The position numbers were made by a program, and so were the translations under genes. Positions 1 through 41,703 of a stretch of 64,000 nucleotides of DNA are shown here, piece after piece; the stretch's first letter is position 1, and each line of letters starts with the position of its first letter. Where the stretch lies: contig CAJFCJ010000020.1 of the NCBI GenBank assembly GCA_904063045.1, forward strand, positions 302,916 to 366,915, in the 5' to 3' direction. Source of the DNA: Dimorphilus gyrociliatus (lineage: Eukaryota; Animalia; Annelida). Below the pieces are notes generated by a model. The model searched no databases. It was not told where the DNA came from and saw only the letters and a list, made by a program, of their open reading frames with translations.

Positions 1-296
1 CAAAAGAAAATATTTTGAAGCGTGCCTTAACATACACCCATATAAAAATTTTGTTAGCTGTACAACTATTGAATTAAAAAAGCACTAGATGGCATCAGTT
101 AAAGCTCACCAAACTCTTCCCCAATAATCGTCCGTCTTTCATCCAAACTACTCTGATGTTGTTTGTGTTTTGTTTTGTAATTGTACAGTCTATAATAAAG
201 TCATCTCCATTCGTGCATGTTACGTTCTGAAGAGTTTTACTAAACAACAGAAATTAATTAAATCGTAATGGAAGTGATTTGAAATGTCATAAATTA

Positions 297-6231: not shown

Positions 6232-8237
6232 TGAGCAAATAGCAAATTTAAAAACGTTTTTTTACGCTGCATTTGTAACCTCATTCTACTTTTTATTTAA
6301 AATACATTAAAACCTCTAAAGTAATCTTTAATCAAAACTTTTATTACCAGTATTCAATCTGTAGTACATATTATATAGTTATATATAGTTTTTCCCTTGA
6401 AAATAATCAGCTAGCAATCTCATAGTTGATTTATTTAGCTGTCAATGATCAAATATAAGTAAACAATCCGTTTCATATTGATATTAAAGATTTTAACATA
6501 GTCTTGTTTATTATTCTTGATAAATTTTTACAATATTTTCTATTTATTTAACTATTTTGTTTACATTTAGAAACGTATTAATCATTTATAATTCATATAT
6601 ATTTTATGTTCAAAGATAAGGGTCAAAAAACTCTGCAGAGCTGAATAAAGAGATTATTTTCGCTTAGTATATATTTTTAAAAGTATTCTAATCATAGTTT
6701 TGATTTCGCTTGTTGAAATGTGAGAAGAAAACTCATTTAACAGGTCAAAATCAGACATCTGGGTCATTCAAATTTTCTACTGAATATTAAAATAAATAGA
6801 AAATTAGTAAGAGCGTGACTTGAAATTTGAAAATTTAGTTCTTGACTTTGTAAAAAAAGTATCTTTATTTAAATTTAATTGAATAAACATTGTAATATGA
6901 CCGATGCATCTAGTGGGTAATATTTTATTAGTTAATTGAAGTTTCTAAAGACTTTATATTGTACTAAGAACTCATAAGGATACATATATTTTAATTCATT
7001 AATTAATCATTAATTATGTGTCTTTAGACAAGGGGGTAACTGATCATGAGACGAAGATGGAAATCAAAAGGGATGTGGTTGTGGAAATAATCCGGAAACT
7101 CTAATAAACTCGATCCTTCTCATTGAGAACACTATTTTATAACCAAGTTTCTTAATTACTTCTATTAGAAGATAAAGGAGGTGTGTTAAGTCAGTTAGTA
7201 GTTTCATTGAATAAATAAGATTCACAATAAAGAAAGCGACAATTTCCGTATCCTTGTCGTAGAGAAGTTGTGATTTTCCTATAATTTTTGACAAAGTAGT
7301 TATAAATAGAGTACATAGGAAAGATATATTTTTCTTTTAGACCTCTAGCGATTCGAACTTATTCCATGCTTTTATGCGTGAAACTATAACACAAAGAATA
7401 TAGGATTTTTAAATGAAGTATGAATGCAATAAGTACATTTTTAATATTGAAGTGGTATCATTCCTATAGATATCTTAAAATAGTACCCAATAATGCTCAA
7501 TATACTGTATTTTAGATTATCTCATTATGATTATCATAGCGAATTGTCTAATTTCAATATCTTTATTTTATACTAAACTAATCCATAAGAATTGTGTATT
7601 AATAGAGAGGGAGTGTTTAAATTAGGCAAAAAATTGGTACTCACTAACCTCTTGTATTTATTTTGGGTATGTCTTCAATCGAGGTCTGAGTAAACAAAAA
7701 CCATTTTTCCTTATACTTTTGCAAACTAAGAATTAATAACATTATATAACAATATTTATAAAAAATGCTATATATTAATACACTCTATAATTATATAAAT
7801 AGCTTAAAAAATATTATTTTGGCTCCATCTATCGGGTATAATGATTATAATTGTAAACAATTACTTAGAGCTTAGATTATTTTAATAGCGTAGAAAAGGA
7901 AAGAAGAAAATTAGTTATGTTATTATAAAGTTTTTTTTATATATATTACAGATTTGTTACAGCTTTAATAGATGATTATGAAAGAAGTTTTATTGATTTC
8001 TACATAATATCTTTCTCTAAACGTGTTTGAATTTTAAAATGATACAAAATAACTTAAACTATTCCAAAAAATATTAGTTAAGTGCAAGTCGTGATGAGAG
8101 CTCGGAATATACGACAAGGCTATTCGTGATTTGATAAAATATAGACCAAATTATTGAACTTGCCTTTATAAGAACCTCGAATTGATCGGGTTGCTTATAT
8201 CACCTTCTAATTTCATTCAGAACAGTTGAAATTAATC

Positions 8238-8588
8238 ATGAATTCTCTTTCAATTGTTTGTATCGTGGCTTTGGCATTGTGTAAGTAGATTTATTCTATA
8301 CTTTTACAATTATAAATCATTAATTATAGTACTTTTTATTTTATAGTCGCCTGTGCTTACTGTCAGGAAGGTCGAACTGGAGCAACGGGAGCAACAGGCT
8401 GGGGAAGAACGGGAGCAACTGGAGCAATGGGTTTTACTGGTATGACCGGTGCGCCCGGACCAGCCGGTCCAGCCGGTCCACCCGGTCAAGGAGGATTTGG
8501 AGGTAATGTGGACAGCCGTGGAAAACTTGACAGTGGAAAACTAACCTGTTTCTTAAGCTGTTTGAATGAGAAATGCGGAATTCTGTAG
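8238..8588 (+). CDS. Mini-collagen-like secreted protein A (94 aa)
   Basis: Exons 8238-8280, 8347-8588: [94 protein letters not shown]. Confidence 0.92.
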
Positions 8589-9249
8589 ATTGAATACTAT
8601 GAAAATTTACAATAAATGTAACTTTTAAATTCTTTTTCTTTCCCATTTTTCTGTGATCTGAATAAAATAATTTGCTTGAAAAAACTTGCAAAGCATCTGA
8701 ACGAATATTTATTAGTTTTTGATCTAAGATTCAACTGCAAAGGGTATAAATCGAAAAAAAAACAGTCTAAAAAATTATTTAGATGTTTCAACAGTCTTAA
8801 TATAAAAGATATATTTTATGATTACATCTAAAAATACTGTATTCTAAGAGACCATTTACTATGGTCAATTTCCTATTATAAAAGTGAATTAGAGAATTTT
8901 ATCTTATAATAAAGCTCATTTCATATTGTCATTAAACTAATGACATCAGGGCTTCACATCGGTATTTCAGCAGTATGTACTGAAAATTTAAACTAATGTA
9001 TATTGCAAACTACAAAATTACGTGAGTTATAGCTGAAGCTGAGCGTTGGTTATAAGAGAAAGGAATTTTTTCCAGCATGTTCCGGTCCACATTTAAATGA
9101 GGTGTCGTGAGAGCCAGCTGTGAGCAGATTATACTTCGTGACTACCAAATAGGTTTGATAAAGAGATATTTTACTATAAAAACACTAAAAGACTCTAGTT
9201 TCATTTGAAGGATCTCGTGCTTAGGTCCTTTAAAGAAATAAGATTTAGC

Positions 9250-9755
9250 ATGAAATCATTTATATTTGTTGGCATTTGTTTGGCAGCCTTTGGTAAACTT
9301 TAAATCATTTATGAAAAAAAGTTGCACGTTATTTTCTCAATATTAATAAAGATTCTTTCAGTGGCCTTGTCCAGCTGCCAGAGGGGTGATGTTGGAAGAA
9401 TGGGACCAACTGGTGCAACTGGTGAACCTGGTCGACCTGGTCGGGGCGATACAGGTAGTACTGGAAACACTGGACCATCGTACAGAGGTCCAAAAGGACT
9501 TGATGGCAGACAAGGTGCAACAGGACCACAAGGAATGCCAGGACCAGTAGGACAAAGAGGCTCACCAGGTGAAACACTTAGCGGCAGTAGTTCTTTCGCT
9601 TGGACTCCAGAGCGAGGTATGAATGAAAGTGTAAATTTTAAAAATAAAAAAGTTAAAATATAATATTTGTTTTGGAAGGTTATGGTGTAAAACCTGGATC
9701 ACAAGGAGTTGGATGTTTCCTTCAATGCCTGAAAAATGATTGTGATTTATTGTAA
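9250..9755 (+). CDS. Mini-collagen-like secreted protein B (124 aa)
   Basis: Exons 9250-9292, 9362-9616, 9679-9755. Signal MKSFIFVGICLAAFVALSSC-Q; Gly-X-Y blocks of 6, 4 and 10 triplets; C-terminus GCFLQCLKNDCDLL*. Confidence 0.92.
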
Positions 9756-10952
9756 ATCTCCGATAAAATTGAATATGAAATTTGAACGAAAACCGATACT
9801 TTGAAATTTGCTGCAAGATTAGAAAATTATATCTTTTCCTACTGTGAAACTCTCTTTCTCCTTTGTCTTTGAAGAGTATGTTTTGTCTTGAATAAAGTAT
9901 GTTATAATTCAGAAAAATGATCTTTTTTATACATCTTCTCTGTGTAAGTATAGTAGGTTATACTAATTTGTTCAGTAAAATGAATTTTCCTTCCATTAAT
10001 TACACAAATTATTGTTATTATTTTCATCCTAAAAACAATCTGTTTCGGTTAATTCATAATGAATTGATAAGATTAGGATATTATAAAACTCTCTACGACA
10101 ATGTATTTTAATTAACTTCAACATAATCGCTTTAATCTGGAATTTCTTTTTAAAAAGTTAATTAATCATATTATATTTAAAGATTATTATCTTTGGTGAA
10201 AAACAAAGTTGATATAGTTATCCTTTCCCTGCAATTCAATGTTTAATTTAAAAGATATTTAAAAATATGAAAAATACTTCGCTAGATGGCATCCGTAGCT
10301 GCTAACTTTATAGCTTATCTGAAAGAAATATAAAATTCATTTTATTAACTAAAATTGAAGAAAAATCTCTAAATTCTTATGTTTTTTAAAGTAGCCAAAT
10401 ATCTTAATTGATTATTTTCTGCAAAATAGATAGTAGGTGATTTTCATAATGAAAGCGTCTACAATAAATAATGAAAAAACATTTAAGCTTGAATTTTCTA
10501 CCATTTTCTGAAATTCCTTAAATATTTTTATAACTAAATTGAAGCATTGGTTTTTAAATACCGTAAACTAATTTATTTTTTAAAAAATTCTGTTTAAAAC
10601 CTTTATGATGTTATACTTCCAGCTAAACTCCTTTATAGGTGTATCATTAATATTAGCATATTTAGCTCTAAAATAGTTATAATATGGTAATTAACACAAT
10701 CTAGAAGATAAAACTTTAAATCTTCTCGAGTGTGAAAATGGAATCACGCATGTATATTAACCTTTTCTCTTTTCAAAAATTTGAAAAACATTATTCCAAA
10801 ATTCTCGTGATCTAAAATTGACCTTAAATTCAAAACATTCGTGACACAATGTAGGCCAAAAAATTTTACCTCTGGCATATAAAGGCCAGTGAAGTCCTGA
10901 GTTTCAGTCAATGTATCCTGTGGTCTTAGACTCAACCAGTTGAAGTTTAATA

Positions 10953-11321
10953 ATGGATTCACTTAAAATTGTTTGTTTGATGATTTTAGCATTTTGTAAG
11001 TAGTGCATTATATATATTTTAAAGTTGAGTATTGGTAATTGTTATACTTTTTGTTTTATAGCTGCTTGCGCCTTCTGTCAGGAAGGTCAAACTGGAGCAA
11101 CGGGAGCAACAGGCTGGGGAAGAACGGGAGCAACTGGAGTAATGGGCTTTACTGGTTCGCGTGGTCGACCCGGTCCAGTCGGTCCACGCGGTCCACCCGG
11201 TCCACCCGGTCAAGGAGGAAAAGGCGGATTTGGAGGTAATGTGGACAGCAGTGGAAAACTCGACTATGGAAAACTAACCTGTTTCTTGAGCTGTTTGAAT
11301 GAGAAATGTGGAATTCTATAA
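10953..11321 (+). CDS. Mini-collagen-like secreted protein C (100 aa)
   Basis: Exons 10953-10995, 11062-11321. [33 protein letters not shown]...GPRGPPGPPGQGGKGGFGGN...LTCFLSCLNEKCGIL*. Confidence 0.92.
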
Positions 11322-11485
11322 AATGAACAAAATGAACTTTTTCAAGACAAAATATATTCGTTAATGATATTTTCAATCTTTCGATAATTACTATGATTAT
11401 TACTTTTATTAAAATATATCCTAATAAACTGAAATGTACCAAATCTCTGTTTTATAGTATATACATTAACTAAGTGTCGTACAGT

Positions 11486-11518
<33 letters not shown>

Positions 11519-12250
11519 CGCACGGTTGCAATTGGTGAAAATGTTAATATACAATCTTTGATGAGAAAAAATTATAAGCTCCCTTCTAATCATCATATTA
11601 TGAATCTCCTAAAGTGATAAGAGAGATAAAGATATAATAAAGTGTAATTTCAAAGAAATAGAATACTTAATTTGTTCAAAAATATAAGGAAATATAAAAT
11701 TTCTGGTGGATTGGTCAAAAAATATCCAACATTTATTGAATAAATTACATAATAGAGCATCATGCTATGTAGTATAAACAAGAAATGATTATTTAACAAT
11801 TTACTATTAAAAAATGTATTTATTTATTTTCAGAGTACTGAACACATATCTGAAAAGTATTTCTGAAAGATGTACTGTGTCTACAATGTGTTCTTATTTG
11901 TTAAATACTTTTTTGGGCTATATTTTTTAATTAATATAGAAATAGTTCAGAAATCTAGAATACATAATTTTTCAAAGGTTAATTAATTGGTATTCCGTAC
12001 TTAACTTTCGAGATTTTCAACTCTCAGTTTAGCAAATAAATACAAAGATTTTGTAGTTTCAGTTACATGTTCGTTCACATATGCAAAGCATATTAAAATT
12101 AAGTGTCGTGAGAGCCAATCGTGAACAGACTACACTTCGTGACTAGAAAGGAAGGCCAAACAAAGACCTATCGTCTTATAAAAGGGCAGAAATTTATTCG
12201 TTTCATATCGAGAGCTGCAAGGGAGGTTCAATCGTAAATTAATACTTAGT

Positions 12251-12756
12251 ATGAAATCATTAATATTTGTTGGCATTTGTTTGGCAGCCTTTGGTAAACT
12301 TTAAATCATTTATGAAAAAAAGTTGCACGTTATTTTCTCAATATTAATAAAGATTCTTTCAGTGGCCTTGTCCAGCTGCCAGAGGGGTGATGTTGGAAGA
12401 ATGGGACCAACTGGTGCAACTGGTGAACCTGGTCGACCTGGTCGGGGCGATACAGGTAGTACTGGAAACACTGGACCATCGTACAGAGGTCCAAAAGGAC
12501 TTGATGGCAGACAAGGTGCAACAGGACCACAAGGAATGCCAGGACCAGTAGGACAAAGAGGCTCACCAGGTGAAACACTTAGCGGCAGTAGTTCTTTCGC
12601 TTGGACTCCAGAGCGAGGTATGAATGAAAGTGTAAATTTTAAAAATAAAAAAGTTAAAATATAATATTTGTTTTGGAAGGTTATGGTGTAAAACCTGGAT
12701 CACAAGGAGTTGGATGTTTCCTTCAATGCCTGAAAAATGATTGTGATTTATTGTAA
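12251..12756 (+). CDS. Mini-collagen-like secreted protein D (124 aa), near-identical copy of B
   Basis: Exons 12251-12293, 12363-12617, 12680-12756. Offset +3001 from B; only the codon 4 difference (TTT F vs TTA L) was seen. Confidence 0.92.
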
Positions 12757-13732
12757 TTCAAGTGTTGGAAAAATAAAAGTCGAAAAACGAAACCCAAAGT
12801 TAATTTGGAAATATGAAGAAAAACTCTACAGCATGATGTTTCATACTCTATTCTTTTTTTATTTACATATTTGTATTGAATATATTTTGTCTTGAATAAA
12901 CAAAATTCTAAACAAAATTACAAACTTTGACTAGTTTTGATAGTTATTAAATAAAGTACTGTTGCCAAAGCAAATTTATAGAGTATGAAAATTTTTTCGT
13001 TCATATTAGAAATCAGAAAAAGCCTTTTAATACAATTTTCAACATTTTAAAACGATTTTTGCTTATATTGTTTACTATTCTGACAAGTAAGAAGAAAATA
13101 CACCCTAAAGTTAGACTTTATCACCATTGGCAAAAAGTCTATTTGTAATATACTATTAGGAGTAACGTCTAAGAAAATTTATGTAGATAACCCTACATTT
13201 TTGTTAAATGTTGGAATTTGTTGGAAGTTTTCATGAGTTATAAATTAATTTAATTTTAAAAAGCAAAAATTATGGTTAAATCCTGAAGTTTGTAATATAT
13301 CTAATGTAACGAGTGATACTGTTGCTAATTGCCTCTGTATAGTTATTCTTTAAACCCTTTAAAAGAAACTTAAAAAATTGTTTTGTAATATAGATATTGT
13401 ATTTTTTCAGATATGAAATAAATAAACCTAACGAATATGTTAATTTATTGCATTAAATATTATCTGTAAATAATGATGTTATAAAAGACTGAAACATTTA
13501 CTTTAAAAATAATATTCAAAGCAAAATGAGATTGAGGTTTAATGTAGGTAAATCAACAACGCCGATTGTTATAGAAAAGGTCGAATCGTGAGCGATAAAT
13601 ATATGCTGAACGAGTTCGTGAGTTGGAACTGGGTTAAAATTTGCATATTATCGAAATATAAAGAATTGAAATAAACTTTTAGCCTCATACTTCAGTGTGT
13701 TTAGCAGGAGAGAACCTCAAGTATAATTCACC

Positions 13733-14140
13733 ATGAATTCTGTACTTCTCTTTTGTTTCTTAGGTTTTATCCTTTGTAAGTAATACTTCTATTTTTTTAT
13801 TTATTACTTCTATATTTAATCAATTACAGTTGCCGGCTCAAATTGTCAAAAAGGCTATACCGGTGATACTGGACCAGAAGGACCTACTGGAGCGACTGGA
13901 GCAAGAGGACATGGTAGTACAGGCGCCACCGGATTAAATGGAAGACCGGGATATGGTAGAATGGGCGGAACTGGATATACTGGTTACACCGGAGATCGTG
14001 GAGATTCTGGCATTTTAGGACCAAAAGGCTTCAAAGGAGCTCCAGGATATGCGTCAAACAGCCAAGGTTACGGTTCTGTAGATTCTACCAGATTTGGGTG
14101 TGTTTTGTCCTGCATGGATGAACCATGTGGAATTGCTTAA
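13733..14140 (+). CDS. Mini-collagen-like secreted protein E (117 aa, Tyr-rich)
   Basis: Exons 13733-13775, 13830-14140. MNSVLLFCFLGFILFAGSNC-QK; Gly-X-Y blocks of 6, 4 and 11 triplets; C-terminus FGCVLSCMDEPCGIA*. Not in the ORF track. Confidence 0.92.
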
Positions 14141-15301
14141 AGAAAATGAAAACAAACTATTCAAGGCAAAATATATTTGTAAAATTCTTACCTAATCTTA
14201 TTTCTAAAATTCTTTCTTTTATGTTACCAAATACAAAATTTAAAAATAAACATTTTTAAAACTTAGTTCATTTATATTCATCCTAATACAAAACACTGTA
14301 ATAAACTCCCATCTAGATTACTTAAGAAACATCCATCAATTGTAGAATGCCGATGTAAACTTAATTATTATTAAGACTATCATAAATTGTAAATTTAGGC
14401 AAATTCCATCTTTATAAGGCATATTATGAAAAAAGAGTAAAAATGATACACTTCATGACATACAAAAATGCCCAAAAAATACTTTAAATAAAAAGTTCTA
14501 AAAGCGACTGACTACCTGATTTAAACTTTGCTCCTTTTACATGATGTAAATAGTCCATGATCTTATATAATATTAGAAAATTTTACTTCAGCATTCTATA
14601 GTTCACATAGTGTTTCAATATAATTAATAAGAGCAACTTTTTCAGAAGTTAATCAAATTTTAGATAAATAAAAGTAGATGCGCATCTTCGATTAAATTAT
14701 AACTAATAAATAATGCACTAAACTAATTAATTAGATGTAGAAAATAGACAAAAAAATTGTCGAATATTCAATATAAATGATTTTTAGGATAAACGGAGAG
14801 TTGGGAATATCTTTTTTCAACCGAAAGTTGAAAAATCGTGACAAAATCCTAATACAATAGAAAGGAAAATCGATTGTAATACGTCGTGTTATGCAAAAGG
14901 TATATTAGTACAAGTATTTAATACTTTAATAAACTTTTCAAAGTTTTTATGAACAATTTAAAGATTCTATTCGTATAATAACTCTTAAGGTATGAAGAAA
15001 ATGCTTTTAGTCGTGAAAAGTAGTATAATCAAAGTCCTAGCTTCGTTGTCACTATTTATTCATTAAACATCCAAAACGGATGTGGCAAAAGGTAAAAGTT
15101 TTCAAGAAAATAAAAGACCATAGGAAAGATTTTTTAGGATCTCGGTCGTGAGGAGAGAGGGAAATATTGCATGTAATCGTGATATCCTGAGTAGGCTAAA
15201 ACTCTCACATATCGTTATAAAAGCTGAGAAGATTGTCCATTTCTCTTATACTTTTCGAGGTTTTCCAATAAGCTACAAGATAGTACTTCAGTAGAAAAAT
15301 T

Positions 15302-15670
15302 ATGAATTCTCTTTTAATTGTTTGTATCATCGCTTTGGCATTGTGTAAGTAGATTTATTCTATATTATTACAATTATAAATCATTAATTATTGTACTTTT
15401 ATTTTTTTAGTTGCCTGTGCTTCCTGTCAGGAAGGTCGAACTGGAGCAACTGGTGCAACAGGCTGGGGAAGAACGGGAGGAACGGGAGCAATGGGTTTTA
15501 CTGGTATGACCGGTGCGCCCGGACCAGCCGGTCCACGCGGTCCACCCGGTCCACCCGGTCGAGGAGGAAATGGCGGATTTGGAGGTAATGTGGACAGCAG
15601 TGGAAAACTCGACCATGGAAAACTAACCTGTTTCTTGAGCTGTTTGAATGAGAAATGTGGAATTCTATAA
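15302..15670 (+). CDS. Mini-collagen-like secreted protein F (100 aa)
   Basis: Exons 15302-15344, 15411-15670; A-like sequence ending LTCFLSCLNEKCGIL*. Confidence 0.92.
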
Positions 15671-16616
15671 AATGAACAAAATGAACTTTTTCAAGAAAAA
15701 ATATATTCGTCAATGATATTTTCAATCTTTCGATAATTACTATGATTGTTACTTTTATAAAAATACATTTTAATGAACTGAAATGTAAAATATCTCTATT
15801 TTATGGTATATACATTAAACGGATGTTATACAGTCTATAAATTCATAGTACATTTTGCACTCGGTGAAAATTTAAACAATATATAACTTGAATTAAATTA
15901 CAAAGAATATGCCAAATATCATAGCATGGCGAATCTTGTAATTGAAAATACTGAGAACTTGTAAATTTCAAAATGTTCCAAATCCTAAATCTCTTTTTAG
16001 CTAGTAGTATAGCATATATTCATATTTTTGAAGACTAGTAAACGACAATTGCTATTTAGGTTACTTTACATCATTCAATATACAGTCCTCTATTTTGTGT
16101 GGTGAAAATTCGTGACTTTCCAAAAGAGTAAACAACATGTGGCTAAACATTTTAGAATATTATTATCATTGAAAAATATTTCAAAATTTAAGCATTCAAA
16201 AATATTTCTGTTAGTGCTAAAATATAAATATTTAGCATCTGTTATTAGGTGCAGAATACATAAATAAATCTATTAGATCTTTTACTCTAATCTGCCTTTT
16301 GTTTTAAGCAATTATTAACGATTGAAAAGTGCAAAGTTATTTTTTTTCAAAATTAAGCAAAACTATTTGAAATTGGGAATCATTTCATTGTCTAACTTCT
16401 AAGATACAAAATGAAATAAGAAAATTGTATTAAAATATTTCCGATTTAAACAGTCTGAGGTTAAGGGCACAGTCGTGAGAGAAGAGACTTTTTCGCACAG
16501 CGAAATTCGTGATATTTCATATAGGCCTATATTCCTCTTTTTTAGTATAAAACCTAAAAGGATTGGCAATTTCCCTCATACTTTTCAGAATTTTTACCAA
16601 GTTAAGTAGAAAAGTT

Positions 16617-16994
16617 ATGAATTCTCTTTCAATTGTTTGTATCGTCGCTTTGGCATTGTGTAAGTAGATTTATTCTATATTTTTACAATTATAAATCATT
16701 AATTATTGTACTTTTATTTTTTTAGTTGCCTGTGCTTCCTGTCAGGAAGGTCGAACTGGAGCAACTGGTGCAACAGGCTGGGGAAGAACGGGAGGAACGG
16801 GAGCAACTGGTCCAATTGGTGTTGCTGGTATGCCCGGTGCGCCCGGACCAGCCGGTCCACGCGGTCCACCCGGTCCACCCGGTCGAGGAGGAAATGGCGG
16901 ATTTGGAGGTAATGTGGACAGCAGTGGAAAACTCGACCATGGAAAACTAACCTGTTTCTTGAGCTGTTTGAATGAGAAATGCGGCATCCTATAG
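16617..16994 (+). CDS. Mini-collagen-like secreted protein G (103 aa)
   Basis: Exons 16617-16659, 16726-16994; A/F-like with an extra triplet (GPI GVA GMP); ends LTCFLSCLNEKCGIL*. Confidence 0.92.
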
Positions 16995-17838
16995 AGAAAA
17001 GACATTAAAAACATTACAACGTTTTAAATATATTTACAATAATTAATGTGAAAATATTCATAAATCAGTAATAAATACAAAATCTTTACAAAAGATAACT
17101 TTCATTTTTGAAATGTTTTAAAGAAAACTGGTAGATTAATGAAATTTAAAAAAAAGATTAAACAATACATATTAGTTATAGTAAAGTAAAATTGTAATAT
17201 AACATATTAGAGATTTTACTCTAAATAATTCACTTTTAGAAATTTAGAAAGAGTAAATGATTGTTCATTCTTTTTAAAAGAATATTCAATTTTTTAATGT
17301 TTCATTTATTAAACACTACTTAATCAGTCTGTTTTTATCATTAGAAATAATGAGATACAACATTTTAATCGAATTTAACAATGATATATAAAATTAGTAT
17401 ATTTAAAATAAAAGTAACCAGTAATTACATGTTTTAGTAAAAATACGATATATGGAAATTTTATAGCTTAATTGAAGCTATCTTATGCTTTTGGTTTGTT
17501 TTTCGGAATAAGATGATATTTCTAAAAGAACTTTCTTCTTTATTTCATCTAATTCTGTCCTGGCTATGTTTCAAATTGACATATAATCTAATTTTTGTAT
17601 TTCCATTAAAACAATTATAATTTATATTATCAATAAAAGTGTACTTTGATGAAGTTCAAGTTTTGAAAAAATTTTCAGATTTCTACCATATAGTCGTGAT
17701 TGAAAATATTGTTGTGCAGTATAGAGTTCGTGATATTACTTGTAGGCCTATGTTCATATTCTTATTTATAAAGGCTTGAAATACGCCAGAGTGCTTATTT
17801 CTATCACAATATTCAAGTGAAAATCTTCGAAAAAAGTT

Positions 17839-18242
17839 ATGAATTTTCTCCCAATTATCTGTATCATTGCTTTGGCTCTTCGTAAGTAGACTAGCTTATA
17901 TGACAAAAATATTATATTTCAACTAGCATTTCTAAAATTCCAGTAACAGTTGCCAATTGCCAAAAAGGTTGGCCTGGGCCTACAGGTCCCACTGGAGCGA
18001 CTGGAAATACTGGAGAAGGCAGAACAGGTGCAACCGGAGCAACAGGGGCGACAGGACAAGGCATACCCGGTGACAATGGAAACATAGGACGTAAAGGAGA
18101 AAAAGGTTTTCGCGGTGCCACAGGACCTCGAGGACCAAGAGGTTTGCCAGGCGGATTCAATGAAGCAAACCAAAGTCCAGCAGATTCCGGGAGACTCTCT
18201 TGTTTCGTAGCCTGTTCGAGACAAGAGTGCGGTCTCTTTTAA
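17839..18242 (+). CDS. Mini-collagen-like secreted protein H (113 aa)
   Basis: Exons 17839-17881, 17944-18242. [22 protein letters not shown]; Gly-X-Y blocks of 5, 4 and 11 triplets; C-terminus [15 protein letters not shown]. Confidence 0.92.
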
Positions 18243-20287
18243 AGAAAATCAGCAAAAACTATTCAAGACAAATTATATTCATGAATTATATTTTATAATT
18301 AAAATTTTCCTTTTCTTTCAAATAATAAAATAAATAAACACGTAATCTTATTAGTTGAAATTATCTAGTTCCTATTGAGTTTACTAAAGATTTATAGTAA
18401 AATTTTAAAGACGATAAATTTCTTTTAAGTTTCTTTTGAATTATAGAAAAGTTATTAACAAAATTCTTAATTAATGAAAAATCTTTGAGAATATCTTGGA
18501 AGAAATTCATATGGTAATTTATACTGAGAGAATGCATAGCATGTTTAAACAATAATGACTTTCTATTTGTTAATTATAAAAAAGAAATCTTAGTATTTGT
18601 CTAGTTTATTTTATTTTATTTCAAAAGTCTTATATGCATATTTAAAAGTAAAATTGACAACTTTAAACATAAAATTTTCCCAAAAAATAACAAAACCTTA
18701 CAGTGCAATTAGTTCAAGGTTATCCAGTTTGGAAACCGAATAGGCCATAAAATGATTCGTGACGAGTTGGATAGTTTAAAAATAAGTAAAGAGGATAGGA
18801 GAGAAAGACATACATTTACACAAAATTCATATTGGAGTTATAATACATAGTTTCAAGATTAATCTTGAATATATATTCTATGAACAAAGGAAAAAATCAG
18901 TTTTGTTTGAAACAGCAAATTCCTTTAGCAAAGAACTTTATATTTTATAAACGTTTCTTTGTTTTTCATACGAGGAGAGGTATTTCTATTATTACATCTA
19001 TATTATAGACTATTGCTGTATTGTTTATTTTTCTTTGTTTAAATAATACTTTGCATAGTAATGAAAGGATTTGAGATATGTTTTTAAAACTTGAATCAAA
19101 GTTAAATACTTCATATTTTTTCTGCTAAATAATAATTGCAATTTGATATGAAGGTATATATGGTAACCTACTTTTTTTATATAATTAAAGTGTTTAATAA
19201 ATAATAATCTTCATTTTGAATAATTATATCTTTTTAATACACATTTTGTATGTAATGAATAAGATAAAATATACACTAATCATAGTTATATTAATTTCAA
19301 TTGTTCATTGGTAAAATATTCGTGACTTTAAATATAGGCAAAACTTTTAAAACAGCTTTTTTTCAAGGGTTAACTCGATCAATAATCTATTGCCGTTTCC
19401 TCATAATTTAATACAGCGAGAAGAGATTTTCATATGTTCAATTACTATATTCCTTTAATTGATATCTTACTTTCAAGTTGTAAATTAACCAATAATAAAC
19501 TAATAAAAAGTATAATATGGTTACAAATTTTGATACTGAGAATCAACTTCCCCTATGGAATAAATCCTTAATCCATAATTAAGGAGAAATAACTTTAATT
19601 GAATGAAAAGATAGAATAATCAATTAGAAGCATAGGGTATACATTATTTTAAATTACTCTTTCATTTAAATAATTCTTTATCATTTTGAAATAAAAGAAC
19701 AATACAAGTTTAAGAAAAAACGTTACCAAAGCTAAATTGAAGTACTTCAATTATTGAACTTTTGAACTTATTCATAAGTGATGCGTGATAGAGTCTGAAA
19801 AATTTGGACAAGAATTAATGCAATCCGACCACAACGTATTTAAAAATTTTGAATAGCAAGTATTTAAAGTGTACAAACTAGAGAAAAAGTATAAATTACG
19901 CAATATTTATAATTTATTCGCTAATATAGATGGAAAGATAACGATAATTTCAATTTATATTTTTTTAACACAACGTGCTTCGGAAAATATGAAATTTTTA
20001 ATATTTAGAAGTATTAGACCTATAGAAGATGCCTTATGAAAATTATACAATCAATGTACACAAACAGCAAACAGTTGCCTTAGGTAATTAATGAAAACAA
20101 ATATTGATCAATAGGTTTTTTTCAAATGGAAAGCCTGTTGTCGTGAGCAAAACATATCAAAAAATATAATTCGTGACACTATATAGGCTTCTGGTGTGTT
20201 TACAATACTTTTAAAGTATAAATTTTTAGGTCAGTTGCTTAATATCTAGTTTTTCTCCACCAAAAGTACATCGGAGCAAAAATAAGA

Positions 20288-20686
20288 ATGAAATCGTTGG
20301 CAATAATTCTTGTCTGCACTTTTATAATTTGTCAGTATTGTTAAAGTATCTTATTAAACAGCTTATTAACATTATTTTGAACTTTTCTTCAGATGTAAAC
20401 TGTCAAAACAATCCAGCACCTGGTAACTTATAATCAGTTTCTTTTAATATTTGTGAAAGTAGTTTTTTCTTTCTCTCAGACCAAACTTATGGATCACAAC
20501 AACAAACTGGACCCAATCACAATACTTGTAACTTACAAGCAAGTATGGCATATGGACCAGGTAATAATATATCTAAGACAAGAAACTTGAAATATTTAAT
20601 CTTTAATATTTTTTCCAGCCAAACTTAATCGTGATAGATTATCCCAATTTTTGAGATGCATAAATGTGAGATGTGGAATGCTTTGA
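20288..20686 (+). CDS. Collagen-less member I of the same family (73 aa)
   Basis: Exons 20288-20330, 20393-20422, 20480-20560, 20619-20686 (all introns GT-AG, phase 1; 222 nt): MKSLAIILVCTFIIYVNC-QNNPAPDQTYGSQQQTGPNHNTCNLQASMAYGPAKLNRDRLSQFLRCINVRCGML*. Confidence 0.8.
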
Positions 20687-23600
20687 AGGACGATCAACGA
20701 CATCTTCCAGAAACAAGGAATCTTATATGAAAAACTTGTATATCTAATCTAATATTTAATTTCGCTCTTTACAATAAAGTAATGCTTTCCAGTCTATTTC
20801 CGCTTCAAAATAAATGTTTTACATTATTAAAACAATTGTTGTAAAGTTTACTATAAACTAAGAAATTAATTACAATAGAAAAAAAAGTAGGAAATGTTCT
20901 TTGTACGAGATGAAAATACTAAAAGATGCGTCTAAATCCTATTTTAAAGCTTTAAAAGGTGTTATAAGATAAAATAATTTTAACACACCTAGGACATGTA
21001 TAACAAGACATGTAGCGAAATAGGTTATATGCATATTGAGAATATTGTCACGCCATTCCCAAAATAAAAGTACAAATAAAGTAAAAATTCTCCACATATG
21101 TCGTGACTGAAAGAAGAAGAGAAAACAATACGTTTCTCCAATATTTTTGGTAGCCTATGTACATACTTTATAAGTTTTAAAATGTTCAATTCATCTTTAA
21201 AATAGATTATTTACAATTGATTTAAAAACCAAGTTGTGGAAAATTCCTACTTTTCAATGTCGAATCTTGGCAACTGATCTAGATCTATATTTCTAGAGCA
21301 AGAGTTCATACCTTATTTTTTATTATCTAAGAATTAGCATTCGTATTACTTAGTGTGTTATATTCCTCATTAATAGAAAATTAATAAGAAACTTTTTCTA
21401 ACAATTAATAATCTATAGTTTCGTTAGAATTAAATTTTTCCCTGACCTCTCAATATTTGTTAACCTTCTAATATCATTCAATATTCATAATGTACCGCTT
21501 ATAGTTTATTCACATCAATAATTCAAAAAGTAGATATAAATACTGAAACATTAATTATGTAGTTCTGAAATATTTCTAAAATACAATTGTAAATATATCT
21601 AGGAAGGAGAGGAATTTTATTTTCTGTTCCTACAACTAGATGGCACTACCTTACAATATTTAACTATTTTCGATAAGAATAAATGGCATTCTTGACAAAT
21701 CTATAAAACTGTTATACTCTGACTACATACAAATACTTATGATTCTGCAAAAAAACTTATAGTGACTTACTATAAATAAAATCTCTCATTTTTAAGATAC
21801 AGTAATATTTAATAAAAATAAAATTAGCAACTAATACAATTTTAATTATTGGCTTGCTTAGTCATCTTAAATTGGAGACAAATTTATTTTAAATCCATCC
21901 TTCTACCGTAATGGCGATTCCTAGAATGATTATGACTGATATTTTCAAAATCGTAATTTTCTAAATTAACTAAACGTTGTCGTCTGTTTTTAATGTAAAA
22001 TTAATAATTTTTGACATATTTTAGCAATATATGCAGATTGTGAATGATGCTTAATTAGTAAATTGAAGTAACAATAGTCGAAAGAAAACTGTTACTCTTA
22101 TAGTTCCCTTCCGAGTTTTATTTAACAGTCGAAGAAAGGAAAGAGAAAATGATTTTGTTTTTACTTTCTTTTCCCTCTAGGGAGAGAAAATTGCAGATAA
22201 GGAAACTTTTATTTAAATAGTATATAATCTTAAATAATATAAAATAGATTCCTAATTCTAGACAACAAATATAATATCTTGCTATGAAAACGAAAGAGAT
22301 GAAGGACGAATATCAACGATGCAAAAGACGTCATCAGCTTTTCTAGAAGCAAGAATTATTTGTTTTTTTTTTATGTGACAGTGCCTACAATACTAAAAAG
22401 ATTGTTTTATTGTTTTCTTTTAAAATAATAAGAATCATTTTTCCAGGCAAATTGTAATAAATTCGTCAGTAAATTCTAAACAATTACACTTTTTCAACAA
22501 AATCATTGCTTTTTATATTCGTTAAAGATTAATACAATATGTATTGAAAACTAATTAGAAAAGTTATGGATAATATTTCATCTAATGAGGTTGATTGATG
22601 ACTTTTATAAGGTAGAATTTCTAATAGAATCGTATTTAAAAAAGAAGTAATACAACGCCTTCTTTGGTTTATTCTAGAAATAGAATTAAATAATTATATA
22701 ATAAATAATAAATTAAGAACTATATCAGAAAAAAAACGCTTACTGCAAATCTTTGTCTTCCTCTTTAATTTGTTCATACGTAATAAGAATTCTATTTTTA
22801 TTATTTCTATGAAAATAGACAATAATGTCGAAAAATTTCATTTCAAATCCAAGAAAAGATATAAAAGAGATTGAATTTCGTTATCAAGTTATAAAAAGCT
22901 CTATATCTTATTAATTGTAATGATAGATCTTTATTCATAATTTCTTCTCATAAACAACCCAAGATAAATTCTTTACTAAATTTATTGAATTCCTATAGCT
23001 AACTGTTCTTAATTTCAACTGTGTGAAGAGAAAAGAAATGTGCAGTATGGTCTAGATTTTTAATTAGCCCATAGTATTACTCGAAACTCGATAAATTGAA
23101 TTGTTATGTAGAAGAAATAGGAAGGAGAAAAAAAAAAGAAATATAGCAATATCTAATAATACTCTATCAGAATGATGGAATCTTAAGTATTTTATAGATA
23201 ATAAACCCAAAGATTTGCTGGCAAACGATAGTTCCAAAGTAACTGTTAATCGAAAACTATTACGAAACAGATTATTTTAACTAGACTTTAGATGTTTGCA
23301 ACTTATTACGAGAGAGAGAAAGATTTTTTTCTTTATTTATTACATCACTCTGTTTTTAAACATACACTCTAATTTTGTAAATCTTTTGTTGATATACAAA
23401 GACGGTAGAGTACATGTATAACTCATAAAGAGTCTTTAGAAGTAGTTGATGTGATATACACACATGTACTTACATTGGCCAACAAACTACATTTATATTC
23501 TTTTTATCCGGATAAAATCGTTATAACCTGTATTTAAATAGAAGCGTCGAAAAGAGCCGTTATTTGAGGCATCTTATCATCCTCGAGAAAGCTTTCAACC

Positions 23601-36489: not shown

Positions 36490-38442
36490 TTAAATATACG
36501 CTTCATCCTCTTTTTCAGCAGCTTCATTGTCGTATTCCCTTAATTTCAATTGAGCAGTTTGACTCTTTCGGAAAAGGCAGGCTGTATCATCTCTTCTAAT
36601 TACCTCTCTCCTGTAAAGATATAGAAATCCGATAGATGACGCTAGTAGTAGGAATATAAGGATTGATAGTATTGTAATGACACTGACGAAAGTTTGTCTA
36701 TTCAATTTGACATAGTTATCGTCAGATGGAATATCTTGAACGCTTTCCAATTCTTTTTCGGAGCTAAATCTAATCGACATTACAACGTTATCTTCTGCAA
36801 ACTGATCTGTGGCTCTCCTCTGTCTTTTCGATGACTTTAATAATGTAGAATTTGAACATACCGACGGGTTGCATTTATTCATTTCATTCATTAGACATAA
36901 AATAACTCTACAATGTAGAAAGAAATTACTTCCCGACGAAAATTTAAAGAGTTTTATCTTTCCAGTTTCAAGCATATGAGCCTGAGAAGAATATCTTCTC
37001 CAATTATTAAGGGAGTTAAATGTATTTTGGTTCGCTACGGGACATCCTTCAGCAATTAATGGCAAACTTAGACTGTCATCATCTCCCAGAGTATACGAAT
37101 TGCTAGCTATACAATTTCGAACTTTAATTGCCCCATAAGCGTCTCTCTTATTCAAGACGATTATAAACCTAACAGAATCTCCAACTCTCATATAAGTATC
37201 ACTTGGAACTCTTTCACCGATGGTATTTTCAATGAATGTTGAAAGGTTTGGTACACTGTGAACTCCAACACTCCCTCGAGCGTGTCTGTTATAGAGATAA
37301 CGACAATGAACAGTGAATCTATTACATAAGTATTTTAATTAGTTGTTTAGAAAAATCTTACTCAATTACTCCAACGGCTTGGAAATTCGATCGAACTTGT
37401 GTTATAAATTCGCAGAATGTATCGAATATAATATCATTTACAGATGGCATATCATACTTTTGAACATAGATTTTGCTTGAATATTTTATGCTATCGGTCA
37501 TCATAATTTTTCTCATACCACAATGATCTTCTTTTAATGGTAATTGCAATAAATAAGCTCCTTTATATTTACAATATTTCTCATTTGGTCGTCCTTGACA
37601 CTTTATATCTTCCCCATGATTATTGGTATATATTCTGGAACTCGTACTTAAGTTAATACCATCATGTTGAAAATAACAAACATTCATTGTCATTGTATCA
37701 ACCCAACATTTTACATCGACTGTATAAATTAAAAATAAATATAAGTAAAAAGGAATTCTCAATAAATTATGTGTTATATGCTACCGTGAATTATCTCGCA
37801 ATTTTCTCCTGATCTGGACGCCGGGCATAGACAACCGTCCTTTAATAAATCATCATTTATATCATAGCATTTCCCTTCGTTGTTTTCGCAAATAAAACAA
37901 TTAACATCTAAAAAGGTTGTTATCATTTGGGCGCAATACTCTTCGCCGTTTTTTCGAACGTGAAGAGTATTTTGATCGCACATACATTTATGTAATCCAT
38001 CAGATGAATCTGTACAAGAACTATGTTTCTTTAAACATCGTCTTGTTTCTTTTAAGCAGTGCTCTCCTATGCCAGGTAGAAATTGACAGCTTCCATTCTG
38101 CATATGATAGCTGTCTGATTCCTTGCAGAGACATCTTTTTGATGATCCATCAACTTCGATACAGTTCAGACTGTCAATATAATTAAGGGGGTCAAATTTT
38201 TTACAATCCTCTATGGTTTGGCACGTGGAATCAGTAAAAACATTTTCGTGATTTAAGGCTGTTTTTTTGTTCTAAATGTTAATTTACTTAAAGAAAAATT
38301 CATAATAAAAGTTTTATAGTAAAATATATGCAGATTAGAGATTGTAATACAAGAGAAAATACAGAAAACATGGCGTACCTGATACAGTAGTCAAAATCAC
38401 CGTATAAGTGTAAATTTCAAGTATTAAGTCCAATTTATTCAT
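36490..38442 (-). CDS. Cys-rich/EGF plus ZP-domain type I membrane protein (~563 aa)
   Basis: Exons 38442-38379, 38258-37785, 37719-37362, 37285-36490. Signal peptide, Cys-rich modules, EGF, ZP-N, ZP-C (FFLHCRVILC), furin site KRQRR, TM ILSILIFLLLASSIGFLYLY. Last acceptor (37285 vs 37318) chosen by alignment to the paralog. Confidence 0.85.
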
Positions 38443-39226: not shown

Positions 39227-41703
39227 ATGTTGGCGAGTATATTCCATTGTCTCCGATTTAGGTCGGTTATAACTTTCTTCCTCCTTGTCTTTATTGTTAA
39301 AACTTCTGCAGGTAATTTGATTTGAGCTTCTTATTTGTTTTTTTTTAATAGAAATATTCATAATTATCGTCCGGTGATGTTTTTGCCCTTAGATCAATTG
39401 GCCCTTAGTGAACCTAAACAATGTGAAACTAATCTTGATTGCAAAACCAAGCATAGCTACTGCAAGGTTATGGATACTTCAACTGGTACATCGCAAGGAA
39501 ATACTCCTCCTACAACAATAGGTCAAGGACAGACAACTTCCATGCATATCTCAACTGCTGGAATCACTAAAAGCAATTCAGAAACAACAAAAATTGCAAC
39601 TACGAAGGCAGATGAGCTGACAACGCAAAGTGAGACGATCAATGAAACGACTACGGGAATAGCTGTGAAACCGACAACTGTTGTCGAAATAACGACTCAA
39701 AACACTCATAGCCAGGCTATAACCACTGAAGGTTCTGAAAATCACACAGAGGGAACAACGACAAACGAAACTATTAGTGAGTTAACAACCAATAAAGAAT
39801 TTACTTCCAGAGCTACTCAAACGACTGATAAAACCGGGATATCTACAACGATGAATAATGTAATCAGCACAGAAAAACAGATTACAGAGCAGTTTACCAC
39901 TGAGAAAGCAGTACTTGAAAGAACTACGTACAGTCCTTCGCCAATAAAAAGATGCGTTTGTGATAGTTCAGCAGGCTGGTTCAAAGATGGAGATACTTGT
40001 AGTGAGTTCTTTTAAAAAATAATCAATTGATTAAATTCTACCATATGTATTTATTTATTCATGAATATTATATATGCTTTATTTCGTATTGATATTCCAT
40101 TAATACTATTACTTTATCAGAAAACTATGCAGACCTATACGACCCTTGTAGTTCAATAACAATATGCAAAGTAAGACATTCCCATTGTGTCTTTGATGGT
40201 GTCAACGTACAAGGAAAAAGATGTAAATGTAAAACTGGTTATATAGATGTTCAGCATAATGGTACTCTGACCTGTGGTCAAATTATAACGCATTACGATG
40301 ACCCTACATGCAGTATATGTGAAAAGCATGAAGGTATTTGTTATAGTTCAACCGGAAACGGCAGACGAGACGGCTGTAAATGTAAAAGTTCAAGACAAGG
40401 CGTTGACTGCGAGAAATTATTGGGTAAAGAAGTTAATAATTAATCGCTTAGTTCATAAATTCTATTATTCATATTCTATTCAGTGAACGTCTATTGCTCC
40501 GTTCCCGCTAACACAATGACAATTTGTTTCAAGCCAACAAATCGATTCAATTTTAAAACTGGAAATTCTGTTTTGCATGCTAAAGGTAAAGGTAAAGATG
40601 AAGCATGCAAGGGAAAGCCAGCAGACAAAGATTCAATATGTGATAAAGATTCAATAGCACTTGTCTTATCTTGGAAAGAAGAAAATAGACGTCGTTGTGG
40701 AACAAATCACTATACTGACGGAAAAGGGGAAAGAACTTACGATAATGTTATTGTTGCAGCTGAGGATTCAAAAATAAATACACAAAATGATTTGTATTTC
40801 AACACATATTGCAAATTTAGGAATTATGTTCAAAACACATTTAAAGGCATTGCAGTTCATGCGTTAGTTTTAATATGATATTAATTGTTTCGTATTAAAG
40901 TATGTTTTTGTTTATAGAGTGCCGGGAAATGACAGAGGGGAAACGAAATTGCCAAATTTACAATTTGCAGCCGAATTTCAAACTGGAAAGCTTATTGATC
41001 CTTCGTATCCTGTTAGAGTAGGGGATAAAATTCGTTTGATAATAAAAATGACAGATGTGGAAAGTTATTCTGCAATTCTTGTTACGGAAATGACAGCGTC
41101 TAGTTCATTCACTAAACCTGATCCTAAAGCGGTAACAGTTCCACTTATTATGAATGGTTGCCCTTACGAGAACCAAAAAACATTTACTAATGAAAACATG
41201 TGGAAAGTCGCACACAACGATCCTCGTCAGCTAAGAACTGGTCTTATACGAATGTTCAAACTTTCAAAGGGTAGTTCTGTTTTCTTTCACTCAACTGTAA
41301 GAATCTGTCTTATAGGAGAAGAAATAAAATGTAAATTAGTGAGTATTGCACTTTCTCAATTATTTAATCCGAATTTTTTACTTTGTAATTATTTTTGCAG
41401 CATAACTGTACATGGCCACTTCAAAAACAACAGTCTAGGCGCAAAAAGAGAGCTTTAAAGACATCGGAAGAAATAGATACTCTAGAACTCAGATGGTATG
41501 AAGATACTGGAAACTCAAGTAACGGCGGATTAACAGCTTTATTTTGTGTAATTGCCATAGCAACTCTGGCTTTAATCGGAATAACCGTCTTTTTTGTAAT
41601 AACCAAGAAAAAGATAACTTTTAAGAAACCTGAAGTTTGGACAACTCTACCGCAAAGATTTGCTATACCAAGATTAGATCAAAATAAGCATATTAGAATG
41701 TAA
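39227..41703 (+). CDS. Cys-rich/EGF plus ZP-domain type I membrane protein with a Thr-rich mucin tract (~699 aa)
   Basis: Exons 39227-39311, 39393-40001, 40121-40423, 40484-40862, 40918-41338, 41401-41703 (2100 nt). Furin site RRKKR, TM and short tail; clear paralog of the minus-strand gene (VRVGD..R.II, PLI..GCP..NQ.TF, TG.I..FK.S.GS..F.H). Confidence 0.9.

Follow-up and report, generated by a model that had tools for sequence, protein, structure and literature searches.

Nine tandem genes in Dimorphilus gyrociliatus, eight of them encoding tiny collagens with a three-cysteine tail: candidates for a secreted structural material

Nine plus-strand genes form a tandem array between positions 8238 and 20686 of the window (the whole 64,000-nucleotide stretch of D. 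gyrociliatus DNA analyzed here), and eight of them encode very short collagens. We consider it probable that the array is a co-regulated, lineage-restricted family, and that its products are disulfide-linked mini-collagen rods of a material secreted by small marine worms. We infer secretion, trimerization, the disulfide pattern, glycosylation, polymerization and the tissue, and with them the reading of the array as a polymer system, for which cuticle, cocoon, adhesive or mucus would be candidate materials.

The initial annotation had proposed a nine-gene tandem array with a common 43-nt first coding exon and a phase-1 intron, and our gene models confirm both: the exon and a GT..AG intron in this phase are present in nine of nine genes, and the first introns are 54-69 nt long. 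A six-frame scan and a search for ATG+40 nt+GT placed the start codons of the eight collagen genes at 8238, 9250, 10953, 12251, 13733, 15302, 16617 and 17839. We observed 11 Gly-X-Y runs of at least seven triplets, whereas shuffled windows did not yield a run of even four triplets in 100 trials. The spliced models also bear out the proposed protein lengths of 94-124 aa with 15-21 Gly-X-Y triplets, as follows:

8238..8588, plus strand: gene 1, type A; 94 aa; exons 8238-8280 and 8347-8588 (including the stop codon); intron of 66 nt
9250..9755, plus strand: gene 2, type B; 124 aa; exons 9250-9292, 9362-9616 and 9679-9755
10953..11321, plus strand: gene 3, type A; 100 aa; exons 10953-10995 and 11062-11321
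12251..12756, plus strand: gene 4, type B; 124 aa; exons 12251-12293, 12363-12617 and 12680-12756
13733..14140, plus strand: gene 5, type C; 117 aa, 21 triplets; exons 13733-13775 and 13830-14140; intron of 54 nt
15302..15670, plus strand: gene 6, type A; 100 aa; exons 15302-15344 and 15411-15670
16617..16994, plus strand: gene 7, type A; 103 aa; exons 16617-16659 and 16726-16994
17807..18335, plus strand: gene 8, type D, mRNA; CDS 17839-18242; 113 aa; exons 17839-17881 and 17944-18242
20266..20750, plus strand: gene 9, helix-less sibling, mRNA; CDS 20288-20686; 73 aa; four exons, 20288-20330, 20393-20422, 20480-20560 and 20619-20686; all introns phase 1

Genes 2 and 4 are duplicates that hardly differ (one residue apart; 98% over 300 nt, spacing 3001), each with three exons and the tail on a separate, predicted exon. 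The introns of gene 2 measure 69 and 62 nt, each in phase 1, and its third exon was predicted from GT..AG, the phase and the regained conserved tail.

The chains share a layout of putative signal peptide, recognized by eye in the sequence, Cys-Gln, a region of 15-21 triplets, a Gly-rich linker and a three-cysteine tail. The proposed terminal C-X3-C-X4-C recurs in all eight collagen genes, with Cys at -13, -9 and -4 from the C-terminus. Cys-Gln, missed in the initial annotation, is invariant in all nine genes immediately before the first Gly, and its Cys may be a fourth, N-terminal cysteine of the mature chain, the count being three or four depending on cleavage. The helix region has one or two breaks at conserved places, mostly G-X-G; the linker is Gly/Ser/Asp-rich and spans 10-25 residues, the tail 25-38, and the protein ends four residues past the last Cys. 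Of the 127 Y positions, Thr occupies 51 and Pro 21. Across the gene models, Thr is found 40 times in the N-terminal half versus 11 in the C-terminal half, and Pro 11 versus 38 times, with no Pro at all in the N-terminal helix half of three of the four type A genes. Gene 9 lacks Gly-X-Y, as had been claimed, and has Gln in place of the first Cys of the tail motif, the last two being kept. The AlphaFold monomer is poor (pLDDT 40; only ~50 for the tail helix). An amphipathic coiled coil was considered for the tail and dropped because its hydrophobic moment was not significantly above that of shuffles.

We searched a space of 5.8 billion protein clusters for homologues. A profile search of short proteins gave 1209 matches at E up to 1, and among the best 120 one (P0176) was a homologue with the tail. 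It belongs to a second species, in which the gene is unannotated (genomic contig L001). The family had been supposed to be lineage-specific and indeed looks lineage-restricted, with this single homologue, from a second species, among the matches listed. The gene structure on the second contig is that of the array (43-nt exon 1, 66-nt intron), the gene order B-A-B equals the array's alternation of types, Cys at -13/-9/-4 and the Gly-X-Y register are kept, and a promoter module (paired TCGTGA, TAGGC, TATA) precedes both genes. Within the array, synonymous sites are saturated between paralogues (pS 0.6-0.9). The tail displays a pN/pS of about 0.1, that is, purifying selection, versus about 0.5-0.9 for the helix within type A, a much weaker constraint. 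The tail, and not the helix sequence, is therefore the constrained part.

At the level of sequence, uninterrupted Gly-X-Y runs matching PF01391 place the proteins in the collagen superfamily: genes 8, 5 and 2 score 32.6-34.2 bits against a cutoff of 27.2, and gene 1, at 22.2 bits, falls under it. With E up to 1, the Pfam scan listed no domain other than PF01391. Absent from that scan were Col_cuticle_N (PF01484), expected of nematode cuticle collagens; C4 (NC1) PF01413, expected of spongin short-chain or type IV-like collagens; the C1q, C-type lectin and fibrinogen heads of C1q/collectin-type defense collagens; and the FN3, VWA and TSPN domains of multidomain FACIT collagens. Two minicollagen features are also absent from the chains: CX3CX3CX3CX3CC at both ends (the tail has three Cys and the N-terminus one at most), and polyproline flanks or a propeptide, the helix lying within two residues of Cys-Gln. 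A word search with the whole gene 8 protein gave only three weak bacterial-type collagen matches, which are not relatives, and for the gene 6 tail (region 46-85) no candidate had three 5-residue words in common. A profile of the family alignment, run against a library of 1.84 billion representatives, gave no CX3CX4C among the 150 matches listed, in a ranking dominated by long collagens, whose summed repeats result in high scores. The 32-residue tail had no match in PDB at E up to 10, the ESM Atlas returned generic collagen clusters only for both the whole protein and the tail, and JGI metagenomes contained no match to either of two degenerate DNA patterns, one for the helix-break motif and one for the A-type tail. 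The proposed mismatch to known collagens thus stands: no described short-collagen family tested has the same architecture, and the searches run assigned the tail motif to none.

The same data bear on a reading that we hold to be rather improbable, in which the products are soluble, non-structural secreted collagen-like molecules, serving as defense or recognition stalks or as signaling or antimicrobial peptides. Immune effector families are often rapidly diversifying tandem families, and this is a very small, quickly diversifying one, with helix positions that are relaxed or diversifying and no matrix-binding domain recognizable by Pfam. However, known soluble defense collagens require a globular head, which the Pfam scan did not find, and dibasic processing sites are absent. 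Moreover, the part under constraint is a cysteine tail of the trimer-knotting kind (PMC4863159).

For the structural reading that we prefer, we suggest the following assembly. The region of 15-21 triplets, if folded, would make a rod of about 13-18 nm. The C-terminus would set three chains in register, and the triple helix would be nucleated at the Pro-rich C-terminal triplets and zip toward the Thr-rich end, whose Thr residues may carry O-linked glycans like those of annelid cuticle collagen; interchain disulfides of the tail cysteines would then lock the trimer. Because the number and geometry of the cysteines would bar full pairing within one chain, spare valence could join trimers to one another, giving an extracellular material held together by disulfides. 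The product of gene 9 could be a cap or regulator of this linking, since, although helix-less, it retains the putative signal peptide and the greater part of the tail. C-to-N zipper folding of collagen has been described (PMC11923368), and the Thr and Pro halves fit it. In both minicollagens and FACIT collagens, a C-terminal cysteine cluster is trimer knot and cross-linker (PMC4863159).

Counting against a helix are the short, interrupted Gly-X-Y regions, of just 15-21 triplets, and the low imino acid content of the N-terminal halves, proline-poor in type A and without any Pro in three of its four genes; the monomer model, too, is unstructured. There is a small chance that no triple helix forms and that these are flexible secreted Gly/Thr/Pro-rich chains, such as mucus-like components or those of an adhesive coacervate, joined by Cys only. 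Against this, Gly periodicity is strict across paralogues despite the saturation of synonymous sites, the positions of the breaks are conserved, the Pro-rich block adjoins the tail in the manner of a nucleation site, and the register is the same in the second species.

The initial annotation had supposed that the genes are co-expressed. A motif search identified one promoter module upstream of each of the nine:

8089..20176, plus strand: shared promoter module
8089/8124; 9105/9136; 10805/10839; 12106/12119/12137, plus strand: TCGTGA sites of genes 1-4
13586/13616; 15146/15177; 16473/16507; 17694/17728; 20141/20171, plus strand: TCGTGA sites of genes 5-9

The paired TCGTGA sites are 30-35 bp apart, near -150 and -114 relative to the ATG. 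TATAAA follows at about -72 in eight of the nine genes, gene 1 lacking an exact copy, and five of nine upstream regions contain TAGGC. On the plus strand, 24 of the 33 TCGTGA sites in the window fall inside the array; the minus strand has five in the whole window. Because this promoter is shared and is conserved across both species, we argue that the genes are co-regulated, in line with the supposed co-expression. Its nine-fold repetition and presence in two species also make it a handle for finding the cell type and the regulator.

Spliced contigs from public runs confirmed all introns of genes 8 and 9, together with the first intron of both gene 1 and gene 3. Gene 8 is represented in runs X5 (17807-18264) and X2 (17812-18335), with the joint 17881>17944 and zero mismatches, and the contig ends at 18264 and 18335 adjoin poly(A) signals. 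All three joints of gene 9 lie within a single X5 contig. The junction of exons 1 and 2 of gene 3 is shown by loose ends in X5 and X2, and the 5'UTR of gene 1 is carried as a loose end on a spliced X5 contig. Reads were aligned to 16500-20750, with loose ends reaching genes 1 and 3; the read-based confirmation of splicing covers genes 1, 3, 8 and 9. A search of RNA runs with a 3.1 kb query listed no run, and a one-gene search across runs of any kind listed six. The spliced contigs begin 20-30 nt upstream of the ATG, stop after the stop codon near poly(A) signals, and contain no joint between neighboring genes. They represent small independent mRNAs, and not the larger spliced collagens that the initial annotation had named as one outcome that would overturn it. 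That the ORFs belong as exons to a larger collagen gene or a few such genes, or that they are pseudogene copies in decay, as the close spacing, single strand and alike collagen exons might suggest, is thus largely refuted and most improbable, given these contig boundaries, the intact frame and own promoter of each copy (with TATAAA in eight) and the purifying selection on the tail.

Returning to the secreted rods, we put forward only tentatively, as a rather doubtful extension, that the family is a bilaterian, convergent counterpart of cnidarian minicollagens, in which 13-18 nm rods with an N-terminal Cys and a trivalent tail would polymerize by disulfide exchange into a specialized secretion of a miniature worm, gene 9 would supply a chain terminator, and one transcription factor would switch on the whole set through the paired TCGTGA. 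To our knowledge, the other natural collagens of such shortness in animals come chiefly from the stinging capsules of cnidarians. A second, independent solution, in which a short helix is combined with a minimal three-cysteine tail and with Thr-rich, possibly glycosylated stabilization, would show how little sequence folds and cross-links a collagen. If true, it would provide a compact, recombinantly tractable module for matrix biology and biomaterials, and may identify the main protein of a molecularly uncharacterized structure (cuticle, egg capsule or adhesive) in meiofaunal annelids.

Cnidarian minicollagens are likewise a secreted multigene family with a very short helix and Cys clusters. 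Their helix has 12-16 triplets, versus 15-21 in the array, and they possess a six-Cys domain at each end as well as polyproline stretches and a propeptide (PMC4863159). The array proteins differ in having a single CX3CX4C tail, no polyproline and a Thr-rich, broken helix, and no sequence similarity to minicollagens was found. The COL1-NC1 knot of FACIT collagens (IX, XII and XIV) is similar in its short C-terminal non-collagenous end, whose two cysteines are four residues apart, like the last two of the array tail. According to the account of Lesage 1996 given in PMC4863159, these end cysteines form interchain disulfides after helix formation. FACIT chains, however, are large and multidomain and their first Cys abuts the helix, whereas the array has a linker of 10-25 residues and a third Cys; no homology to FACIT was detected. 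Nematode cuticle collagens share with the array small size, multiple copies, secretion, broken helices and cross-links by conserved Cys, although they are about 300 aa long and have Cys clusters around each helix block, as well as the N-terminal Col_cuticle_N domain that the Pfam scan did not find in the array. The sawfly silk collagens SfC A-C are also a small secreted set, low in Pro at Y and spun into an external material, with short Gly-rich ends without known homologues flanking the helix, as in the array (PMC3790195); their chains have 60-62 unbroken triplets, lack a cysteine knot and belong to a lineage unrelated to that of the array. Annelid cuticle collagens of the Riftia type are giant chains, unlike the proteins of about 100 aa with a cysteine tail and only putative glycosylation described here, yet they resemble the array in the dominance of Thr at Y (40% in the array). 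In the vent worm, glycosylated Thr at this position stabilizes the cuticle collagen helix (Mann 1996, as reported in PMC11923368).

The array is a real and expressed family of genes, conserved in at least two species. A six-frame scan of the window, which is AT-rich (GC ~25-38%) and holds about one gene per 3-5 kb, confined Gly-X-Y runs to 8.3-18.2 kb, all on the plus strand. Eleven runs of at least seven triplets were observed, and runs of even four were absent from 100 shuffled-window trials, which excludes a chance origin. Searching for ATG plus 40 nt plus GT with a hydrophobic translation recovered eight 43-nt first exons preceding the collagen frames; each, spliced to the next in-phase acceptor, gave a complete ORF (genes 1-8), and the introns in the array models are 54-69 nt long with GT..AG ends. 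Without a third exon, the frames of genes 2 and 4 run on into an unconserved end. Scan and spliced models thus bear out the initial annotation, which had described a tandem array of small genes, eight with Gly-X-Y repeats and a C-terminal C-X3-C-X4-C motif (the tail) and a ninth without a helix, with a common 43-nt first coding exon followed by an intron.

Features of the array (window coordinates)
Genes 1-8, plus strand: spliced models with products of 94, 124, 100, 124, 117, 100, 103 and 113 aa
9679-9755, plus strand: predicted third exon of gene 2, required to reach the conserved tail
12680-12756, plus strand: predicted third exon of gene 4, required to reach the conserved tail
20288-20686, plus strand: gene 9, four exons, every intron in phase 1, 73 aa, without Gly-X-Y

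The genes fall into four deeply diverged types (A, genes 1, 3, 6 and 7; B, genes 2 and 4; C, gene 5; D, gene 8) plus the helix-less gene 9, and synonymous sites are saturated between types (pS 0.6-0.9). Judging from their sequences, the pairs 2/4 and 6/7 are recent copies or gene-conversion products. Exon 1 codes for the n- and h-regions of a putative signal peptide, and an invariant Cys-Gln (precursor residue 20) stands immediately N-terminal to the first Gly in the nine paralogues and the second-species genes. In types A-D small residues at -3 and -1 form a good cleavage site two residues before it (A-x-A in type A), and therefore the Cys may stay on the mature chain. Since Cys-Gln is also conserved beyond expectation for a mere signal-peptidase -1 residue, an N-terminal Cys may be present on the predicted mature chain.

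The helix region comprises 15-21 triplets. In every type its first 3-6 triplets are followed by a G-X-G break, and types B, C and D have a second break ~34 residues ahead of the helix end. The Y position is occupied by Thr in 40% of cases (51/127) and by Pro in 17%. Comparing the N- with the C-terminal half, Thr counts are 40 versus 11 and Pro counts 11 versus 38, a polarity for which p-values are only indicative because the paralogues are not independent; the Thr bias is seen in all four types, and the Pro bias is due to type A and does not occur in type C. Helix and tail are connected by 10-25 linker residues rich in Gly, Ser and Asp. The Cys of the tail invariably occupy positions -13, -9 and -4 counted from the C-terminus, and the last of them precedes x-[ILM]-[LFA]-stop. 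Gene 9 keeps the last two Cys, has Gln for the first and carries one additional Cys upstream. Within type A, the tail shows pS of 0.24-0.39 with pN of 0.00-0.04, and the helix pN/pS of ~0.5-0.9; constraint thus falls on the tail.

An AlphaFold monomer built on a six-sequence alignment was poor (pLDDT 40), with a helix at tail residues 62-73 (pLDDT ~50). A coiled-coil tail was considered and dropped, and is not claimed here, because the hydrophobic moment of the tail does not exceed that of shuffles. A helical tail with Cys at i, i+4 and i+9 would expose the first and second of them on the same side and the third on the other. This purely geometric consideration speaks against an intrachain arrangement in which all three are paired.

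Expression was traced in public sequencing data. A one-gene search gave six runs, four of which were mapped onto 16500-20750; spliced contigs covering array transcripts are present in runs X5 (2017, filed under another organism label) and X2. The gene 8 joint 17881>17944 was confirmed by contigs 17807-18264 and 17812-18335 with zero mismatches, and a single contig contains all three joints of gene 9 (exon ends 20330, 20422 and 20560; exon starts 20393, 20480 and 20619). Loose contig ends from the mapped runs match the 5'UTR of gene 1 and the exon1-exon2 junction of gene 3. Splice confirmation thus concerns genes 8 and 9 and intron 1 of gene 3; splicing of genes 2, 4, 5, 6 and 7 is that of predicted models. 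No contig mapped to 16500-20750 joins neighbouring genes, and 3' ends lie near AATAAA or ATTAAA signals; the transcripts are therefore small independent mRNAs, not parts of larger collagen genes, and the refutation by such splicing that the initial annotation had named fails. The spliced gene 8 and gene 9 contigs carry no extra 5' (leader) sequence. Leader-free ends and intron lengths, together with ~30% GC, the gene density and identical sequence in runs filed under two organism labels (2017 and 2020), would fit a miniature marine annelid. They agree with the median intron of 66 bp and lack of trans-splicing reported for D. gyrociliatus (formerly Dinophilus) in its genome paper, which makes no mention of collagen or cuticle (PMC7854359). 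Separately, run X6 (2024) reads every listed cytosine in 16955-17558 as T, which suggests a library converted by bisulfite or enzymatically and a lack of methylation in this intergenic stretch.

A profile search of short proteins returned one homologue from a second species, P0176, the sole carrier of a CX3CX4C tail among the 120 collagen-like matches listed (of 1209). The contigs encoding it, L001 (SRR23372229) and L002 (SRR31984831), are genomic DNA. Their A-type protein is 51-54% identical to genes 1, 3, 6 and 7 and has the same helix-break motif around Trp; the gene order on these contigs shows that the window's alternating A/B order is conserved.

Features of the second-species contigs, in order, and of the promoters
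First: end of a B-type gene, with the CX3CX4C tail plus three extra residues
Next: complete A-type gene, 43-nt exon 1, 66-nt intron, 90 aa
Last: another B-type gene, its 43-nt first exon
Window 8089-20176; L001 1003-1075 and 2130-2205: paired TCGTGA modules, conserved between the two species

The nine array genes and both second-species genes are preceded by a pair, in some cases a trio, of TCGTGA sites spaced 30-35 bp apart (~-150 and ~-114 from the ATG). Gene 4 has a three-site module (12106/12119/12137), which is almost the same as that before the second-species B-type gene. TATAAA follows at ~-72 in 8/9 window genes; the exact hexamer is absent there from gene 1 and the second-species A-type gene. 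Between the downstream TCGTGA and the TATA box, five window genes and both second-species genes have TAGGC. On the plus strand, 24 of the window's 33 TCGTGA sites fall in the array; the minus strand carries 5 across the entire window. This enrichment and the common module support a probable co-regulation of the array genes. TCGTG is the core sequence recognised by bHLH-PAS factors of the NPAS4/Dysfusion type. Single sites also occur at 14836, 15011 and 16110. Genes 8 and 9 are separated by 1.9 kb, in which orphan sites occur at 18757 and 19320-19345, one followed by TAGGC. With tblastn, no coding exon was recognised downstream of them; they are possibly what remains of an array gene since lost.

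Beyond the array, the sole pair of TCGTGA sites so spaced (46677/46713, 36 bp apart) lies just downstream of a bZIP_2 transcription-factor exon (46058-46414, plus strand, E 2e-17). Two divergently oriented ZP-C genes, 16-20 kb from the array (36490-37762, minus strand, and 39335-41458, plus strand; Pfam E 1e-9 and 1e-8), have a weak cuticlin C-terminal match, and one of them also has a mucin-like stretch rich in Thr and a transmembrane end. Both possibly encode apical-matrix proteins. A 796-aa single-exon ORF at 57980-60370 (plus strand) contains the N-terminal and catalytic regions of glycosyl hydrolase family 116, with an inserted PAN domain.

The family is, on its sequence, not assignable to any described collagen family. 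Pfam matched the array proteins to the generic collagen repeat PF01391 and to nothing else; the tail had no relative in PDB at E up to 10, no lead in the ESM Atlas and no relative sharing sequence words among short proteins, and two degenerate DNA patterns found no match in JGI metagenomes. Nematode cuticle, spongin/type IV-like, C1q/collectin and FACIT identities were ruled out, as the required Pfam domains are missing. Minicollagens are defined by 12-16 triplets between polyproline and six-Cys domains at both ends (PMC4863159), flanking features all absent here. The earlier claim that known architectures do not match therefore holds, and the Pfam, PDB and Atlas searches led to no described short-collagen family. 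We rate the array products as short, putatively cysteine-knotted secreted collagens, for which a structural-polymer function is plausible. Functional analogies are found elsewhere: for the tail, in minicollagen C-terminal domains and FACIT junction cysteines, which form trimer knots (PMC4863159); for Thr in Y, in an annelid cuticle collagen, stabilised by glycosylated Thr at that position (Mann 1996, as cited in PMC11923368). Collagen folding is nucleated at the C-terminus and proceeds N-terminally (PMC11923368), which the Pro-rich block adjoining the tail fits. Sawfly silk, likewise analogous in function, is an external material spun from small, Hyp-poor collagens (PMC3790195).
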